Shown: positions 48,130 to 55,535, counted from the whole stretch's first letter. The stretch: 63,328 bases of DNA, filler included, from Octopus bimaculoides (GCF_001194135.2; 6 parts of 5 records of this genome joined end to end with filler, not necessarily neighbours in it); one strand, 5' to 3'. Numbers and translations are program-made. The notes: generated by a model not told the origin, from the sequence alone.

Positions 48130-48213
48130 CTCCGAGACGTTCACGCACCGTTGGGCGCCTCCTTGTCATACTGCAAGAGGGCATCAATCTTTGCGCTTCC
48201 AGTCACGGCAATG
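48130..48213 (+). CDS. ITSN: Internal coding exon A (84 nt, phase 1-1): start of an intersectin-type C2 domain, (A)[27 protein letters not shown](G)
   Basis: Long polypyrimidine tract with TTCCGTAG acceptor and AATG/GTAAGA donor. Peptide resembles the intersectin PH-C2 junction as I recall it (human ITSN1 [30 protein letters not shown]). Homologous to exon B. Confidence 0.75.
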
Positions 48214-48360
48214 GTAAGACAAGTCAGCTTTCTGCTGCCTCACCTTTGCAGTTCCGCTGCACGAAGACTGCAAAAGTTACACCGATGACCTCCACCGGTC
48301 ATTGGTTTAGAATGGTCATTTAGAATTGCTATGTCTTGACCTTTGTACATGTTTTGTTTT

Positions 48361-48405
<45 letters not shown>

Positions 48406-48790
48406 GTATATCTGTATCTGTTTTGTTTTTATATATTACTGACAAACACTCACATAAATTGCTTTCTGGATGTTATTGCTGTTTTAGCTCTATTTAATAC
48501 GTTATTCACATAGATTTTTTTTTTCTCCTTGTAAATATGGTTGCTATAGTTACCACATCACAACTTAAATCTCTTATTTTTCATCATTCAATTTCTTTTT
48601 CGTCAATCTACTTATTTATTATTCATTATGTTTATTTGTTGTTTTTTTTCTCTGTCTTGAATTTGTCAAAATTAATTAAAGATTTCTTACATTGAAATGC
48701 TTAATTAGTCAGTTAATCATGTCTTGTATATTTATTGTTTTGTTAATGTTAATTAGATTATTTCTTACACTAGCACACAAGATCTTTTTG

Positions 48791-48850
<60 letters not shown>

Positions 48851-49008
48851 TTGCATAAAGAGTGCAGTTATTAGAATAACCTCTTAACGTCATAATTGTT
48901 TGACATACCTTAGCTAAAATAATTTAGTGCATATCGTTGTCATTGTTTTTTTTTTGTTTTTTTTGTTGTTGTTGTTATCATTCAGGCCTTGTGCCTATAG
49001 TAGAAAGG

Positions 49009-49057
<49 letters not shown>

Positions 49058-49059
<2 letters not shown>

Positions 49060-49612
49060 GAGTGAGAGAGCAGTGCATGCCATCAACGTAACACTGGGGT
49101 ACAAATATATGAAGCCCAGTAAACCCATCAAGACTACCTGTCTGATAAGGGTACACCAGTCACATGCATCACAACCATATGTGCGTGACATGGTGATTTC
49201 ATATCAAGATAAACAGCGCATGACCTTGCAGGTGGGGGCCCAGTTAGAATTTTCTTCAGGTCAAGTAGCCCATCCCTCTCAGTGGTCCTTGAATAAGGTT
49301 TGTTTAAGGATGTTAAACGAAACACCCATGTTTCCAAAGGTGAATTATTCAAATCCCAAAGAATTCCTCTCAACACATGGCTATGATGTTTGCCTACTAC
49401 TTCTGCTCATGATCAGAGATGCACATATCGTCAGGCACCAAAGGACCTGTTCAACTGGTTAAGGTCATTCAACTGACAAGCAGATCTGTGGTATTGAGCA
49501 GAATATTCGCTGCAACCCATTTTTTTATATCATGACAAAACAATGTACATGATAACACTTCCAATCAGTTAAGATCAGAAGCCATGAGAACCAGTGACTG
49601 GTACTGTGTCAG
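49058..49612 (-). mobile_element. Interspersed repeat, probably the 3' region of a non-LTR retrotransposon ending in (TAA)n (48990-49057)
   Basis: GC-richer non-coding block terminating directly in a (TAA)n array on the minus strand; family assignment is from recall only. Confidence 0.45.
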
Positions 49613-49649
49613 GACAATCATCATCATCATCATCATCATCATCATTATT

Positions 49650-49860
49650 ACCATTTCATATATGCACAACAGATTAAACTGCTGGAGAAGAAAAATTCCT
49701 AACATTGAGCAACAATAAGTAACCTTAGATGCCAAGAACCCTCCTAAATATCCTAGCTGTCCCTAATAACACTGTTTTCAGGAGCTGTACTATACTGGGT
49801 TTTATGCCTATTTCCTCTCTCCATCTGTTGAAATCTTTAGGGATAGTTCTACCACAAGTG
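49650..49860 (-). pseudogene. 3' end of another R4/Dong-like RLE LINE
   Basis: TIPKDFNRWREEIGIKPSIVQLLKTVLLGTARIFRRVLGI*, followed by a short UTR and a (TAA/TGA)n tail. Confidence 0.8.
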
Positions 49861-50112
49861 AAGTTAGTAGGACATTACATTACACACACACATATATATA
49901 TATATATATATTCTCTCCTGGTGCTGTATGAACATTTAATGTTTTAGAGTCAAGTTTTGGCTGCTATATCGAGCATGGTGGTTATCTCTTAGATACCTTT
50001 ATATATATATATATATATATACATAGAAGCATATAGCATAGTGGTTATTGTAATCATACGATGAACATGGCGAGCTGGCACAAAGGAAAATGAAAAAAAT
50101 CTTAACAGACCG

Positions 50113-50310
50113 GGCAGGAAGCTGGCAGAATTGTTAGCACACTGGGCAAAATGTTTTGCAGCATTTTATCCATCTTTACGCTCTGAGTTCAAATTCTCCT
50201 GAGGTCAGCTTTGCTTTCCATCCTTTTGGGGTTGATAAAATAAGTATGAGTTGATCACTGGGGCTGATGTAACTGACTTACACCCTCCTACGAAATTGCA
50301 GGTCTTGTTT
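50113..50310 (+). mobile_element. SINE family A (CpG-decayed)
   Basis: GCTGGCAGAATTGTTAGCAC..CTGAGTTCAAATTC..GGGGTTGATAAAATAAGTA. Confidence 0.85.
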
Positions 50311-52680: not shown

Positions 52681-52924
52681 CGTTTAGAAAAACATAAACA
52701 AATTAAAATGATTCGGTTTTTACAATGAAGTAATATCTAAAATTTAGAAGTTTTACTCATTCAGTTAATTTTCATAATTTATACCTGTTACTGATTATTA
52801 ATTTTATGCTTGTTACTGATGTACATAATTTATGTTTGTTACTAATGTGCATAATTTATGTTTGTTATTGACATAGATACTGTATGTTTATTGTGGACAT
52901 TGATAATTTGTTGCTGATGTAGAT

Positions 52925-53224
52925 CAGTGGTTCTCAACCAAGTCCCATATGACCTGTGTGGGTCCATATGACCCTTGGGGGATCATATGACCCTTGGGAG
53001 TTCATATGACCCTTGGAGGTCCATATAAAATTGTTTTTGTTAAAATTTATCTGCAATAAATTGCGTATACTTCTTTGATGTATCGAAATATTTTTAAGCA
53101 ACTCTTAATAATTAATTATAAAAATATAATGGGATATTTTTAGACATTGAATGGCTATGAGAGCCTTCCCAATTAAAATGAGAATCAAATGAGTCCACAG
53201 CCAAAAAATGGTTGAGAACCACTG
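52925..53224. mobile_element. hAT (Charlie-like) MITE, 300 bp, perfect 8-bp TSD ATGTAGAT
   Basis: TIR CAGTGGTTCTCAACC / GGTTGAGAACCACTG; TSD at 52917-52924 and 53225-53232; internal CATATGACCC repeats. Confidence 0.95.
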
Positions 53225-53905
53225 ATGTAGATAGTCTATGTTTGTTGTTAATGTATGTAATTCTTGTTTCTTACCGATCTGTTTGAATTCAATAACACTT
53301 GTCTCTTTTCAAAAAGAAAAAAGAATATTAATATCAAATAACTTTGTTGTCCTGTTTTTGTCCATTTGTTTTTTTTAGGTGCACAGTGAACGTTGTTTGC
53401 ATGTGTTTTATTAACCCCGTTGCATGTATCAGACATCATCATAACAATTATAGAGCCCTTTCTCATTTCTTCATTTATAAAACCCACACAGTGTTTGAGT
53501 GTCTGTAAATGTGAATTTCTATAAACAGGGTTGAGTGCGGAGTGGGGTGAATGACCTCACAGAGGTGTTCTTCCTTCTAAATACAAATACTATGGTAGGG
53601 GCTCATATATCCAATGTGCTGGCCCATTTGAGTTATTCCCCTTGGCTCATTTTAGCTCTTGATTGAGTTTGTTTGTGTGTTTGATTTTTATATTTTAAGT
53701 ATCTAGCATGAGTTCTTGCCATCTAATTATATGGCTAAATCTAGTTAACTGAAGTTTTTCAATTCACTATAGTAATACATATGTGAGACCCTTACCACAG
53801 ATAGACCGACAGAGTATCTGTCTGTTGGTATAGCATGTATGTATGTATGTATGTCATTATTTAGTTTATTTCAAGATTTCTTGCCAATAGAAAAACGACC
53901 TTGCT

Positions 53906-53943
<38 letters not shown>

Positions 53944-53998
53944 AGTAAAAATAAATACAAAAAAAGGTGGATTTTTTTGTATGATTGTGTATAGAGGA

Positions 53999-54598
53999 AT
54001 ATATTATTTTGCTTAAAAGAGTTCCAACACTGTCTGTTTTTTATGTTTTATTTATATTCCTGCAGAACTAATGTGGGGTATAGAATATGGAATATACAAT
54101 ATATAATATAATATACAATATATAATATAAAATAAAATAAAAATGGATGGCACCATGAAATAAAGTATTGAATGTAGATGAAATATTGAGTGTTCAATAT
54201 AAAGGATCAAATATATAAATATATAAATATATAAATATAAATNNNNNNNNNNNNNNNNNNNNNNNNNNNNNNNNNNNNNNNNNNNNNNNNNNNNNNNNNN
54301 NNNNNNNNNNGAAGGGAAATAGCCCTGAAACTCGAGTCGCCTTTATATATATATATTTATATTTATATATTTATATATTTATATATTTGATCCTTTATAT
54401 TGAACACTCAATATTTCATCTACATTCAATACTTTATTTCATGGTGCCATCCATTTTTATTTTATTTTATATTATATATTGTATATTATATTATATATTG
54501 TATATTCCATATTCTATACCCCACATTAGTTCTGCAGGAATATAAATAAAACATAAAAAACAGACAGTGTTGGAACTCTTTTAAGCAAAATAATATAT
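53999..54598. repeat. ~245-bp apparently perfect inverted repeat around an N gap (arms 53999-54242 and ~54352-54598)
   Basis: The arms read as exact reverse complements by eye. Confidence 0.9.
54311..54342 (+). ncRNA. Partial type I hammerhead motif (5' part lost in the gap)
   Basis: GA-AGGG(aaatag)CCCT-GAA-ACTCGAGT-C-GCCT; palindromic helix III and GUC triplet. Confidence 0.6.
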
Positions 54599-54673
54599 AT
54601 ATATATATATACATTATTTTTATTAGCTGTATATTACTAATAATAATAATAATAATAATAGCAATAACAATGG

Positions 54674-54763
54674 GACCCCGAGGAGATGGAGTATCCTATA
54701 TTTTATAATATTTTATAATATGTATTAATCATTCTGGATGTTCCATCGAAATGTTCATAGGTC
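54674..54763 (+). ncRNA. Type I hammerhead motif with a U4C core variant, embedded between (TAA)n and (TAT)n
   Basis: GACC-CCGAGGA-GATGGA(long insert)TCCATC-GAA-ATGTTCAT-A-GGTC. Helix I 4 bp, helix II 6 bp, near-palindromic helix III. Confidence 0.65.
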
Positions 54764-55062
54764 AATTTCATTGTTATTATTATTATTATTATTATTGTAA
54801 TAAAGTATTTTCAATGGATCAGTTTTGAGCTCTATTTAAAGTTGATATATATATATATATATATATGCAAATGCATATTCACCTCGCTTGGAACCTGCTC
54901 CTTGCATAGATCTGAAATATATTATGGACTGTACATTTAGTGCATGTTTGGTATGAAGGGGTGGAATTTTGTACACAGATTTAACACTAAATTAGGAGTG
55001 TGTGTCTCTGTGTATATAGGTATATATGTGTATGTAAGTGTTTATATATATGTGTATATATG

Positions 55063-55101
<39 letters not shown>

Positions 55102-55457
55102 ATGTTTGAACATGAATATTTGTATGTTTGTACATGTGTGCAATATGATTATTTATTACACTGTAGTGTTAAAAAGAAACTAAACAGAAAAAATAACAAG
55201 ATCAAAAACAAACAGACACTCTTAAAATGTTATCAAGAACTTAGATATCTCATTCTATACCATTTATTATTCCGACATTTCGAAATAGGATATCAACCAT
55301 GTCACCCGTCATGTAATTGTTCTTGCATGTGTTATTAACTTTATGCCACAAACATTGCTTGATAATCCACCCTGCATGGCTCAGCCTCTCCTACCTACCC
55401 TCTACCTTACTTGCATGCTATTTTTTTCTTTCTATCTTTTTTTTCACTTTCTCTCAG

Positions 55458-55535
55458 CCAAACGGACTGGAGGAATTGGACGTCTGCTGGTTGTCATTTT
55501 AGAGGGCATCAATCTTGTGGCATGTGACTTGAATG
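55458..55535 (+). CDS. ITSN: Internal coding exon B (78 nt, phase 1-1): start of an intersectin-type C2 domain, (A)[25 protein letters not shown](G)
   Basis: TTTTTCACTTTCTCTCAG acceptor and AATG/GTATGC donor; GIGRLxVxxxEG motif of the intersectin C2 domain; ends just before the expected KSDPY. Confidence 0.85.

Follow-up and report, generated by a model that had tools for sequence, protein, structure and literature searches.

The window analysed here, 63,328 nucleotides of Octopus bimaculoides sequence (6 parts of 5 records of GCF_001194135.2 joined end to end with filler), carries two exons, A and B, that encode alternative beginnings of an intersectin C2 domain; the features are collected in Table 1, with positions counted from the first letter of the window. 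Each exon is AG/GT-bounded, ends in AATG/GT, opens with 2 nt that complete a codon and closes with 1 nt left over; in context, exon A reads ...ttcttccgtag/CTCCGAGACG...GGCAATG/gtaaga, and exon B reads ...tctctcag/CCAAACGG...TTGAATG/gtatgc. The peptides comprise 29 (A) and 27 (B) residues with the partial end codons counted, and the first loop is one residue longer in A than in B. The core GAGGGCATCAATCTT occurs exactly twice in the window, and none of 100 shuffles produced two copies, even when 2 mismatches were allowed. The features from which an earlier note on this DNA had started (same strand, same phase 1-1, AATG/GT ends and a shared 15-nt core) were thus all confirmed from the sequence. 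Read-through past the exon B donor yields ...NGMLSI, which is the C-terminus of O. sinensis isoform X12.

Table 1. Positions of the two intersectin exons and associated features within the window.
Feature	Position	Strand	Description
3' splice region, exon A	48090-48129	+	moderate pyrimidine tract, 0.76 over -40 to -4, end ...ccgtag
Exon A	48130-48213	+	84 nt, phase 1-1; PH-C2 linker, C2 strand 1, Asp-less first Ca2+-binding loop
15-nt core GAGGGCATCAATCTT (EGINL), exon A copy	48177-48191	+	exact match
5' splice site, exon A	48214-48219	+	GTAAGA, near consensus; oyster exon A identical (GTAAGA)
A-B intron	48214-55457	+	about 7.2 kb as assembled; assembly gap, SINE-like copies, mariner fragment
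Gap and inverted repeat	53999-54598		gap 54243-54310; intronic; join of exon-A contig and exon-B contig
3' splice region, exon B	55418-55457	+	strong pyrimidine tract, 0.92, end ...tctctcag
Exon B	55458-55535	+	78 nt, phase 1-1; linker, C2 strand 1, first loop with canonical Asp
15-nt core GAGGGCATCAATCTT (EGINL), exon B copy	55502-55516	+	exact match
5' splice site, exon B	55536-55541	+	GTATGC, weaker

Many intersectins used as tblastn queries matched both exons, and both peptides are homologous to the start of the intersectin C2 domain (pattern GxGRLxVxxxEGxxL...G). Exon B matched residues 382-406 of intersectin-2 in PDB 3jzy; exon A on its own gave no PDB match. Against O. sinensis, exon A was identical at 27 of 28 residues to exon A of isoform X3, and exon B at 26 of 26 to its counterpart. 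A tblastn search of positions 44348-61096 with vertebrate, invertebrate and Octopus sinensis intersectin C-termini recovered only A and B; neither the exon for the PH-domain end nor the KSDPYC exon was found in this piece of the window, and no coding exon was found inside the A-B intron, which confirms the earlier observation that no downstream C2 exon lies between them. Models of O. sinensis and O. vulgaris, which match the exons of the window at 96-100% identity, include both flanking exons, and the octopus models and the oyster and chiton genomes all place A and B between the PH-domain end and the KSDPYC exon. Exon B has the same length, 78 nt, as its orthologues in oyster and on a metagenome contig (L001); the phases are common to L001, oyster A and B and octopus B, and octopus A has the same phases at 84 nt. 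A and B are homologous exons of one intersectin gene encoding a long isoform with DH-PH-C2 domains, and each supplies the PH-C2 linker, the first beta-strand and most of Ca2+-binding region 1, as far as the Gly that precedes the constitutive KSDPYC exon. The domain and the exon boundary are orthologous to those of the human intersectin-2/intersectin-1 C2 (PDB 3jzy; ...NG/KSNPYC), and the same boundary is seen in fish intron read-through ORFs; vertebrate ITSN1 and ITSN2 have a single copy of this exon per gene, in contrast to the A and B pair of molluscs.

A stretch of 68 N interrupts the A-B intron some 1.15 kb before exon B, and a perfect inverted repeat with 244-bp arms (53999-54242 and 54355-54598) abuts it. 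Because this gap is intronic, no reading frame crosses it; with such a repeat beside it, simple continuity is not demonstrable, and the 7.2-kb A-B spacing is an estimate only. There is also a spurious gap at 56070-56079, with the same 44 bp on either side. Between these two gaps lies the 1.76-kb contig with exon B, and scaffolding is what links it to the exon-A contig. This small contig and the odd perfect repeat facing exon A are what might suggest that A and B belong to two genes, as tandem paralogues, or that the exon-B contig was mis-scaffolded next to A. The final 244 bp of the exon-A contig, however, recur exactly on the exon-B contig, which also overlaps the next contig by 44 bp, and both facts tie it to the A locus; no other coding exon lies between or around A and B; and the order and orientation from A to B are supported from outside the window, since O. 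sinensis mRNA models join A directly to B and the oyster and chiton chromosomes show the same order. In the chromosome-level annotation of O. sinensis the gene is a single locus of about 370 kb, with single mRNA models that hold A, B or both. We therefore regard the two-gene or mis-scaffolding reading as extremely improbable. The earlier note had argued against two tandem paralogues from the small gap and the lack of a downstream C2 exon between A and B, and that conclusion is borne out.

Over the exon, A and B share 56% of their nucleotides, and the similarity of their intron flanks was no higher than that of shuffled controls; the pair is thus not a haplotype or assembly duplicate. Between A and B, pS was 0.78 (saturated) and pN 0.32. 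Logan contig L004 (SRR8281689; 6051 nt) clusters with cuttlefish intersectin, carries the A-type exon alone and has an uninterrupted 1692-aa ORF, by which it is a spliced mRNA. Compared with this cuttlefish-type mRNA, octopus exon A gave pS 0.78 and pN 0.16, with 21 of 27 residues identical. The cuttlefish-type exon A does not keep the nucleotides of the shared core, with 4 of its 5 codons changed, and Ser replaces Asn within the core of exon A in O. sinensis and O. vulgaris. By these sequence comparisons, purifying selection has maintained both copies.

The PH-end exon, A, B and the KSDPYC exon follow one another in this order in the genomes of the oyster Crassostrea virginica (L003), where both A and B are 78 nt long with the same phases, and of the chiton Liolophura (L005); the A-B introns in the oyster and chiton chromosomes are 0.6-1.2 kb long. 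Mean identity among molluscs was 0.52 for A-A and 0.63 for B-B comparisons, versus 0.45 for A-B, and the ...SSHGNG loop of exon A is common to octopus and a chiton. Since the same A-then-B pair is found in oyster and chiton, the duplication is older than molluscan diversification.

The reading of exon A as a pseudo-exon in decay, a dead copy spliced never or by accident, had been named beforehand as an outcome that would overturn the proposal. Compared with other phyla, A has diverged more than B, it departs from the 78-nt norm by two one-codon length differences, and the lack of a PDB match for A alone points the same way. Yet its frame is open and its splice sites intact despite synonymous saturation versus B, pN is far below pS against the cuttlefish-type mRNA, its loop is shared with a chiton, no other version occurs in L004, in the O. 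vulgaris model or in O. sinensis X3, and A is modelled as a confident strand 1. The pseudo-exon reading, which we would credit with next to no probability, was rejected on the signature of purifying selection and on the use of A as the sole version in the cuttlefish-type transcript.

We examined isoform usage in three assembled transcripts and in the RefSeq models of congeners, which are generated automatically, so that the classes below are models and not read counts. In O. sinensis, X3 contains A only, X4 contains B only, and X1, X2, X5, X7, X8 and X10 contain A+B; at the A+B junction (...SSHGN-A-KRTGG...) the junction codon G+CC encodes Ala, exactly as the window predicts. An O. vulgaris model has A only, and two oyster-type transcript contigs (P0286, P0290) have B alone. 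A-only and B-only RefSeq isoforms occur within one species in chiton, oyster, Haliotis asinina, Gigantopelta, Babylonia and Physella. A+B models were found in oyster, chiton, brachiopod, nemertean and chelicerate; Lingula, Tubulanus, Dreissena, Mya, Tachypleus and others have them as well. In three species A+B outnumbered every other model class, with 6 of the 8 isoforms that have a full C2 in O. sinensis, 7 of 9 in Crassostrea virginica and 3 of 5 in the chiton. Some A+B models may be ab initio artefacts, both exons being good-looking and in frame, and the models with A only or B only could equally have few reads behind them. The occurrence of homologous exons within one gene, with A-only and B-only models, supports the earlier proposal of a tandem exon duplication giving alternative N-terminal parts of the C2 domain. 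We consider it probable (about 0.8) that A and B are alternative in-frame homologous exons, anciently duplicated and under selection, which are spliced as A, as B or as both.

The description "mutually exclusive", which the earlier note had applied to the pair, was not supported, in view of the six A+B isoforms of O. sinensis and the like models in oyster, chiton, brachiopod, nemertean and chelicerate; the outcome that it had named as fatal, routine co-inclusion of A and B, may apply, with the reservation that these are models and not read counts. Under strict exclusion, each mature long-isoform mRNA would have exactly one of the two exons, and the A+B models would be artefacts. All three assembled transcripts carry one exon each (A in the cuttlefish-type, B in the two oyster-type contigs); the gastropod RefSeq sets (Haliotis, Gigantopelta, Babylonia, Physella) consist of A-only and B-only models alone; in amphioxus, a clean swap of this exon distinguishes models P0168 and P0176; and a doubled strand 1 in a beta-sandwich looks structurally awkward. 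Opposed to this are the predominance of A+B models in three species and the sequence itself: 84 and 78 nt are both multiples of 3, so that co-inclusion is in frame, nonsense-mediated decay would not remove A+B, and the sequence enforces no exclusivity. The strong donor GTAAGA together with the strongest pyrimidine tract of the region would favour A-B joining. No U12 sites were found, the donors being GT-AG U2-type; no docking/selector pairing was found, and selector-like intron regions were dissimilar; no sequence complementary to the shared core was found, and the inverted repeats present were of low complexity only. The 7.2-kb intron sets no steric constraint, and no known enforcing mechanism (steric hindrance, U2/U12, competing RNA structures or NMD) was visible. 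Hatje et al. 2017 (PMC5740500) require neighbouring similar exons of comparable length in the same frame, which A and B are; splicing of each exon to the constitutive neighbours across the other, which is seen by proxy (X3, X4, O. vulgaris, L004); and no joining of the two unless it shifts the frame, since exon-joining reads without a frameshift disqualify a pair, whereas in-frame joined models (not read counts) exist here. Strict mutual exclusion is therefore doubtful and, in our estimate, improbable as the rule for this gene; splicing as A, B or both is preferred.

Alternative exons of dysferlin change the Ca2+ dependence of its C2A domain. As in the intersectin pair, the dysferlin exons (C2A versus C2A variant 1; PDB 4ihb, 4iqh) swap the N-terminal part of a type-II C2, and both structures were among the fold matches of the oyster B-type C2 model; unlike A and B, they are alternative first exons, each with its own promoter, rather than tandem copies inside the gene, and their co-inclusion is not possible. 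Described tandem duplicated exon substitution events, with mutually exclusive homologous exons (Hatje et al. 2017, PMC5740500; Martinez-Gomez et al. 2021/2022, PMC8373072, PMC9741552), likewise involve adjacent exons that match in phase, are about equally long and code for one and the same secondary-structure element; they too are ancient and conserved, and give isoforms that differ in the homologous segment alone. The intersectin pair differs in that in-frame co-inclusion is annotated in many species, and so is more like two homologous cassette exons. The exon lists of these three papers contain 0 mentions of intersectin, as follows from the single-copy exon of vertebrate ITSN1 and ITSN2. In OGDH (PMC7969005), homologous alternative exons 4a/4b yield Ca2+-sensitive and Ca2+-insensitive forms, and exclusivity is achieved through distant branch points and a short intron, to which the 7-kb octopus intron has nothing alike; OGDH forms differ in Ca2+ sensitivity, whereas for intersectin we only infer such tuning.

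In the AlphaFold model of the oyster B-type C2 (pLDDT 87), strand 1 is GRLLVVLLEGC and loop 1 is DLQASDVNGKSD; the best PDB match was the human ITSN2 C2, 3jzy (TM 0.97, rmsd 1.1 A). In the O. vulgaris A-only DH-PH-C2 model, an 11-residue segment of exon A forms strand 1 with a pLDDT of about 87, and the loop after it is modelled with lower confidence (about 58). The five acidic Ca2+ ligands in loops 1 and 3 of synaptotagmin-1 (D172, D178, D230, D232 and D238) served for comparison. In the alignment with the C2A of synaptotagmin-1, loop 1 of the O. sinensis B-form needs no gap and each of the five ligand positions is an Asp; in the A-form, Ser stands at the first of them and one residue is inserted. 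Vertebrate intersectin C2 domains are without both loop-1 aspartates (e.g. KACKPNGKSN), versus five kept in the molluscan B-form, so that some property other than Ca2+ binding may be the one that matters. Bivalve and gastropod A-type exons have the Asp, shifted by 1-2 positions, so that the contrast with an Asp-less loop holds for cephalopods and chiton, not for all molluscs.

Inclusion of A alone or B alone would give a C2 domain with an alternative strand 1 and loop 1. The B-form would keep all five canonical Ca2+-coordinating aspartates; in the A-form the first would be replaced (Ser/His region) and the loop would be one residue longer. Where both are included, B, as the copy next to the remainder of the domain, would be expected to provide strand 1, and A would become a 28-residue linker extension. 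Exon choice might thereby tune Ca2+/lipid binding of the C2 domain, and might be regulated, e.g. neural versus non-neural. As a speculative extension, to which we give well under an even chance, the pair could be a lophotrochozoan-wide switch more than 500 million years old, possibly convergent in amphioxus and chelicerates, in which a five-aspartate loop versus an aspartate-deficient longer loop sets Ca2+-dependent membrane recruitment of a Cdc42 exchange factor, tissue-specifically (e.g. neuronal) in cephalopods, with A+B as a third, linker-extended state.

Intersectin-L links endocytosis and exocytosis to Cdc42 and actin at synapses, and little is understood of what its C2 domain does. Reviews still give invertebrate intersectin as the short form only (PMC3753573). 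The earlier note had known of no description of the pair in cephalopods: we found no paper that discusses it, but the exon pair is already in public cephalopod annotation, as RefSeq models, and it is not a new kind of mechanism. For annotation, exon A of the window is a true coding exon, and A-only, B-only and A+B transcripts are all to be considered. A deeply conserved pair that rewrites strand 1 and the first Ca2+-binding loop amounts to a natural experiment, in which one protein has two loop chemistries.

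Two homologous exons, A and B (see table), were located in the part of the window running from 44348 to 61096 (hereafter, the piece), each preceded by a pyrimidine tract and AG, followed by GT, and closed by the 3' end AATG/GT. The 15-mer GAGGGCATCAATCTT is present in exactly two copies in the window, one per exon, and none of 100 shuffles contained two matches to it with 2 mismatches allowed. Coordinates, splice sites and shuffles thus confirm the description in the earlier note, made from sequence alone, of two same-strand exons of phase 1-1 with common AATG/GT ends and a shared 15-nt core. 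Nucleotide identity between the exons is only 56%, the 300 nt on each side of A aligned with those of B no better than shuffled sequence did, and self-BLAST of the two regions detected, outside the exons, only dispersed SINE-like repeats and microsatellites. Because the flanks are unrelated and exon identity is so low, the pair goes back to an old duplication and is neither a haplotypic copy nor one created by the assembly. A tblastn search of the piece, with intersectin C-termini from vertebrates, invertebrates and O. sinensis as queries, matched A and B only: the exon closing the PH domain (PH-end exon) was not found within the 3.8 kb that precede A, and the next constitutive C2 exon (KSDPYC exon) was found neither between A and B, in agreement with the earlier note, nor within the 5.5 kb that follow B. 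The lack of flanking intersectin exons within the piece is consistent with the size of the octopus gene, which spans about 370 kb in O. sinensis (the gene range in O. vulgaris is 116 kb).

Features of the piece carrying exons A and B (positions along the window)
Feature	Position	Strand	Description
Exon A	48130-48213	+	84 nt; 2 nt completing a codon at start, 1 nt at end (phase 1-1)
Exon B	55458-55535	+	78 nt; 2 nt completing a codon at start, 1 nt at end (phase 1-1)
Codon AAT of exon A	48186-48188		Asn of EGINL
Read-through of exon B donor	55536-55549		C-terminus of O. sinensis X12
SINE-like repeats	47369-47982, 50119-50308, 55662-56177		about 190-240 bp, 70-92% identical, one orientation
Mariner fragment	52363-52569	+	open stretch with HTH_48 domain of Mos1/mariner transposase (Pfam E = 1e-14), inside the A-B intron
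Inverted repeat	53999-54242 vs 54355-54598		perfect over 244 bp; 253 nt at 98%
68-N gap	54243-54310		inside the A-B intron
10-N gap	56070-56079		
Repeat flanking the 10-N gap	56026-56069 and 56080-56123		identical 44 bp on left and right

Exon B matches residues 382-406 of human intersectin-2 (PDB 3jzy) and aligns at the equivalent position in dozens of intersectins. The exon boundary, with ...NG before the intron and KS(D/N)PYC after it, is conserved; it was seen as intron read-through in fish genomic ORFs, in oyster, and in a compact invertebrate gene on an ENA metagenome contig (L001), where the exon is 78 nt with equal phases. In an AlphaFold model of the B-type C2 domain from oyster (pLDDT 87), GRLLVVLLEGC is strand 1 and DLQASDVNGKSD the next loop; superposition of the model on the crystal structure of the ITSN2 C2 domain gave TM 0.97 and an rmsd of 1.1 A. 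The exon thus covers the linker and strand 1, together with most of Ca2+-binding loop 1, in a C2 domain of type II. Full-length intersectins from molluscs and other phyla were collected by profile search in a set of 1.8 billion representative proteins, together with a full-length abalone intersectin query, and isoforms were inspected at the exon position. From a 5.8-billion-protein set, a full-length Haliotis query (1702 aa) recovered full-length molluscan and cephalopod intersectins; short queries on this set were uninformative (an A+B concatenate gave no match and a 132-aa hybrid C2 only fragments of <=222 aa), as the search seems limited to matches of about query length, and the failure of the exon peptides to match is a false negative.

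RefSeq models for O. sinensis include A alone (X3, XP_029645630.1), B alone (X4, XP_029645631.1), and both exons (X1, X2, X5, X7, X8 and X10) with the junction ...SSHGN-A-KRTGG..., in which the alanine codon is G+CC as the window predicts. A further model, X12 (P0394), ends in ...ACDLNGMLSI, which is the read-through of the exon B donor in the window; X12 retains the intron, truncating the protein after C2 strand 1. The O. vulgaris model has A only. Isoforms with A only and with B only were also found for the chiton Liolophura (X2 and X3, with both exons in X1, X4 and X5), for Crassostrea virginica (X7 and X6, with both exons in seven isoforms), and for Haliotis asinina, Gigantopelta, Babylonia and Physella. 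The real transcripts inspected were few: a Logan contig (L004, from SRR8281689), a spliced mRNA of 6051 nt with an uninterrupted 1692-aa ORF whose protein falls in the 90%-identity cluster represented by intersectin of the cuttlefish Acanthosepion pharaonis, carries an A-type exon alone, and two oyster-type transcripts carry B alone. The proposal of the earlier note that a tandem exon duplication provides alternative C2 N-termini is borne out by the A-only and B-only models in O. sinensis, chiton and oyster; its further suggestion that the exons are mutually exclusive is made doubtful by the in-frame A+B models in the same three.

Both exon lengths are multiples of 3 nt, which keeps the reading frame whether A, B or A+B is included. 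The acceptor tract of exon A is the weaker of the two (0.76 pyrimidine) and its donor, GTAAGA, is near consensus; that of exon B is very strong (0.92 pyrimidine) and is paired with a weaker donor, GTATGC. Since the A-B intron has good sites at both ends, co-inclusion would be favoured unless regulators promote the skipping of one exon, and these good sites match the abundance of A+B models. A search of the sequence for a device to enforce a choice was negative: the intron of about 7 kb leaves no steric hindrance and both donors are U2-type; no complement of the shared 15-mer was found on the + strand as a docking or selector element; no selector-like similarity exceeded that of shuffles in the 300-nt flanks on either side of A and B; and the only inverted pairings were those of (TA)n and (ATT)n and the inverted repeat flanking a gap. 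Strict exclusion, with one of A or B in each mRNA, would fit the few real transcripts, each of which carries one exon; we consider it unlikely, given the abundance of in-frame A+B RefSeq models and that no exclusivity device is visible in the sequence. Transcripts joining both exons in frame disqualify a pair as strictly mutually exclusive (Hatje et al. 2017, PMC5740500), and by this standard and the A+B models we do not so classify A and B. The data support A and B being homologous alternative exons able to replace each other, and not a strict either/or pair; the pre-mRNA would be spliced to contain A alone, B alone or A+B, and substitution of one exon for the other may be the dominant pattern.

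Exon A was also assessed as a pseudo-exon, which the earlier note had named as a refuting condition; this was rejected because A has an open frame and intact splice sites, occurs alone in a transcript, and gives pN 0.16 against pS 0.78 in comparison with the cuttlefish-type mRNA (21/27 residues identical). Neutral drift over such distances would have destroyed frame and splice sites, and exon A is, as judged from these substitutions, a functional coding exon. Between A and B, pS is 0.78 (synonymous sites saturated) and pN 0.32. Compared with O. sinensis and O. vulgaris, the window has an identical exon B peptide and a single residue changed in exon A, which marks it as coming from a different but closely related Octopus species. 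The residue is Asn (EGINL) in the window and in the cuttlefish-type transcript, and Ser (EGISL) in O. sinensis and O. vulgaris; this is most simply an A-to-G difference (AAT vs AGT), as deduced from the O. sinensis and O. vulgaris proteins. The 15-nt core was rejected as an element conserved at the nucleotide level, as the cuttlefish-type A differs in 4/5 of its codons and the Asn is replaced by Ser in O. sinensis and O. vulgaris; it is the EGINL peptide that selection conserves. The nucleotide identity of the core in this species could represent chance (roughly 1 in 100 by a rough codon-degeneracy estimate), or it could be the result of local gene conversion.

The piece contains two gaps. The 10-N gap is spurious: given the identical 44 bp on its two sides, it marks an overlap of contigs left unmerged within a SINE-like repeat, where the true sequence probably runs on without a break. 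The 68-N gap, about 1.15 kb upstream of exon B, is crossed by no reading frame; a perfect inverted repeat abuts it, with 44 nt of unique sequence adjoining the repeat on the right of the gap. This repeat may be a genuine foldback at which the assembly broke, in which case the intersectin pre-mRNA would form a long, perfectly paired hairpin, or it may have arisen in assembly. The earlier note was right that the A-B interval holds a 68-nt gap, but the contig bearing exon B is 1.76 kb long and linked to the exon A contig by scaffolding only, and the 7.2-kb distance is thus an estimate. The placement of exon B is supported in that the end of the exon A contig recurs exactly on its contig, O. sinensis mRNA models splice A straight to B, and oyster and chiton genes have the same A-B order. 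The last two observations also led us to reject A and B as separate paralogous genes or as an artefact, in accord with the earlier note, which had argued against tandem paralogues. The SINE-like copies adjoin (ATT)n/(TTG)n microsatellites, and some of them immediately precede exon A or immediately follow exon B; they match no Rfam family at the gathering threshold, and an Rfam scan of the whole piece gave zero matches.

The earlier note had proposed a comparison with other octopods and bivalves; the A/B pair was found in O. sinensis and oyster, and also in the chiton. In the chromosome-level assemblies of oyster and chiton, A and then B follow the PH-end exon and precede the KSDPYC exon; the introns measure 0.6-1.2 kb and the phases are unchanged. 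Mean identity among molluscs is 0.52 for A-type exons among themselves, 0.63 for B-type exons among themselves, and 0.45 for A vs B. Octopus A is nearest to the cuttlefish-type A (0.79), chiton A (0.63) and the upstream exon of Lingula (0.63), and a ...SSHGNG loop is common to octopus A and chiton A. These identities, higher within than between types, indicate that the duplication is older than the molluscan crown group. Two tandem copies are present in models of Lingula (P0306), the nemertean Tubulanus (P0309), the annelid Paralvinella (P0310), the horseshoe crab Tachypleus (P0316) and the sea spider Nymphon (P0318), and Branchiostoma floridae models P0168 and P0176 show a clean substitution of the C2 exon. 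Lingula shows the opposite arrangement to octopus, with the Asp-containing loop in its upstream copy and a ...HGNTG loop in its downstream copy. The brachiopod, nemertean, annelid, chelicerate and amphioxus duplications may be orthologous to the molluscan pair or convergent. The duplication is not in all invertebrates, since the gene fragment on L001 (1151 nt) has no A-type exon; it reads PH-end exon, 70-nt intron, single B-type exon, 100-nt intron and two further C2 exons. A descent of vertebrate ITSN1 and ITSN2 from the A-type and B-type exons is not supported, the two human exons being closer to each other than to either type.

Substitution events involving tandem-duplicated exons have been catalogued in human and fly genes (PMC5740500, PMC8373072, PMC9741552); the octopus pair is of this kind but differs in that co-inclusion is tolerated. 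The closest functional analogies are provided by dysferlin C2A and C2Av1, which are made by alternative first exons and whose structures were both among the fold matches of the C2 model, and by OGDH exons 4a/4b, reported to give Ca2+-sensitive and Ca2+-insensitive forms (PMC7969005). A 2013 review equates invertebrate intersectin with the short form (PMC3753573). Our literature search found nothing on intersectin with duplicated, tandem-duplicated or mutually exclusive exons, nor on intersectin in cephalopods, in line with the earlier note, which knew of no description in cephalopods; RefSeq nevertheless already contains the isoforms, for O. sinensis as for many other species, so that the pair is a correct rediscovery from raw sequence. 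It is undiscussed in the papers found, though the kind of event is already known.

For the protein, we compared both forms with what we take to be the synaptotagmin-1 C2A reference sequence and Ca2+-ligand numbering. By this alignment each of the five putative Ca2+-ligand positions is occupied by Asp in the octopus B-form, which includes the stretch VFDRDLFSPND, and the A-form has Ser at the first ligand position and one extra loop residue. In an A-only O. vulgaris DH-PH-C2 model, the exon A stretch forms strand 1 (pLDDT about 87) and the next loop is at about 58; with strand 1 confidently folded, exon A is predicted to be structurally competent. In an A+B protein, strand 1 would come from B, with A adding 28 residues to the PH-C2 linker. 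In bivalves and gastropods the A-type loops have an Asp shifted by 1-2 positions, and in vertebrates both loop-1 aspartates are missing from the intersectin C2 domains, unlike the octopus B-form with all five ligand Asp, so Ca2+ may not be the property under selection. Exon choice would tune the Ca2+/lipid-binding surface of the C2 domain, and the pair may possibly, though we hold this only tentatively, constitute an ancient Ca2+-tuning switch in intersectin.
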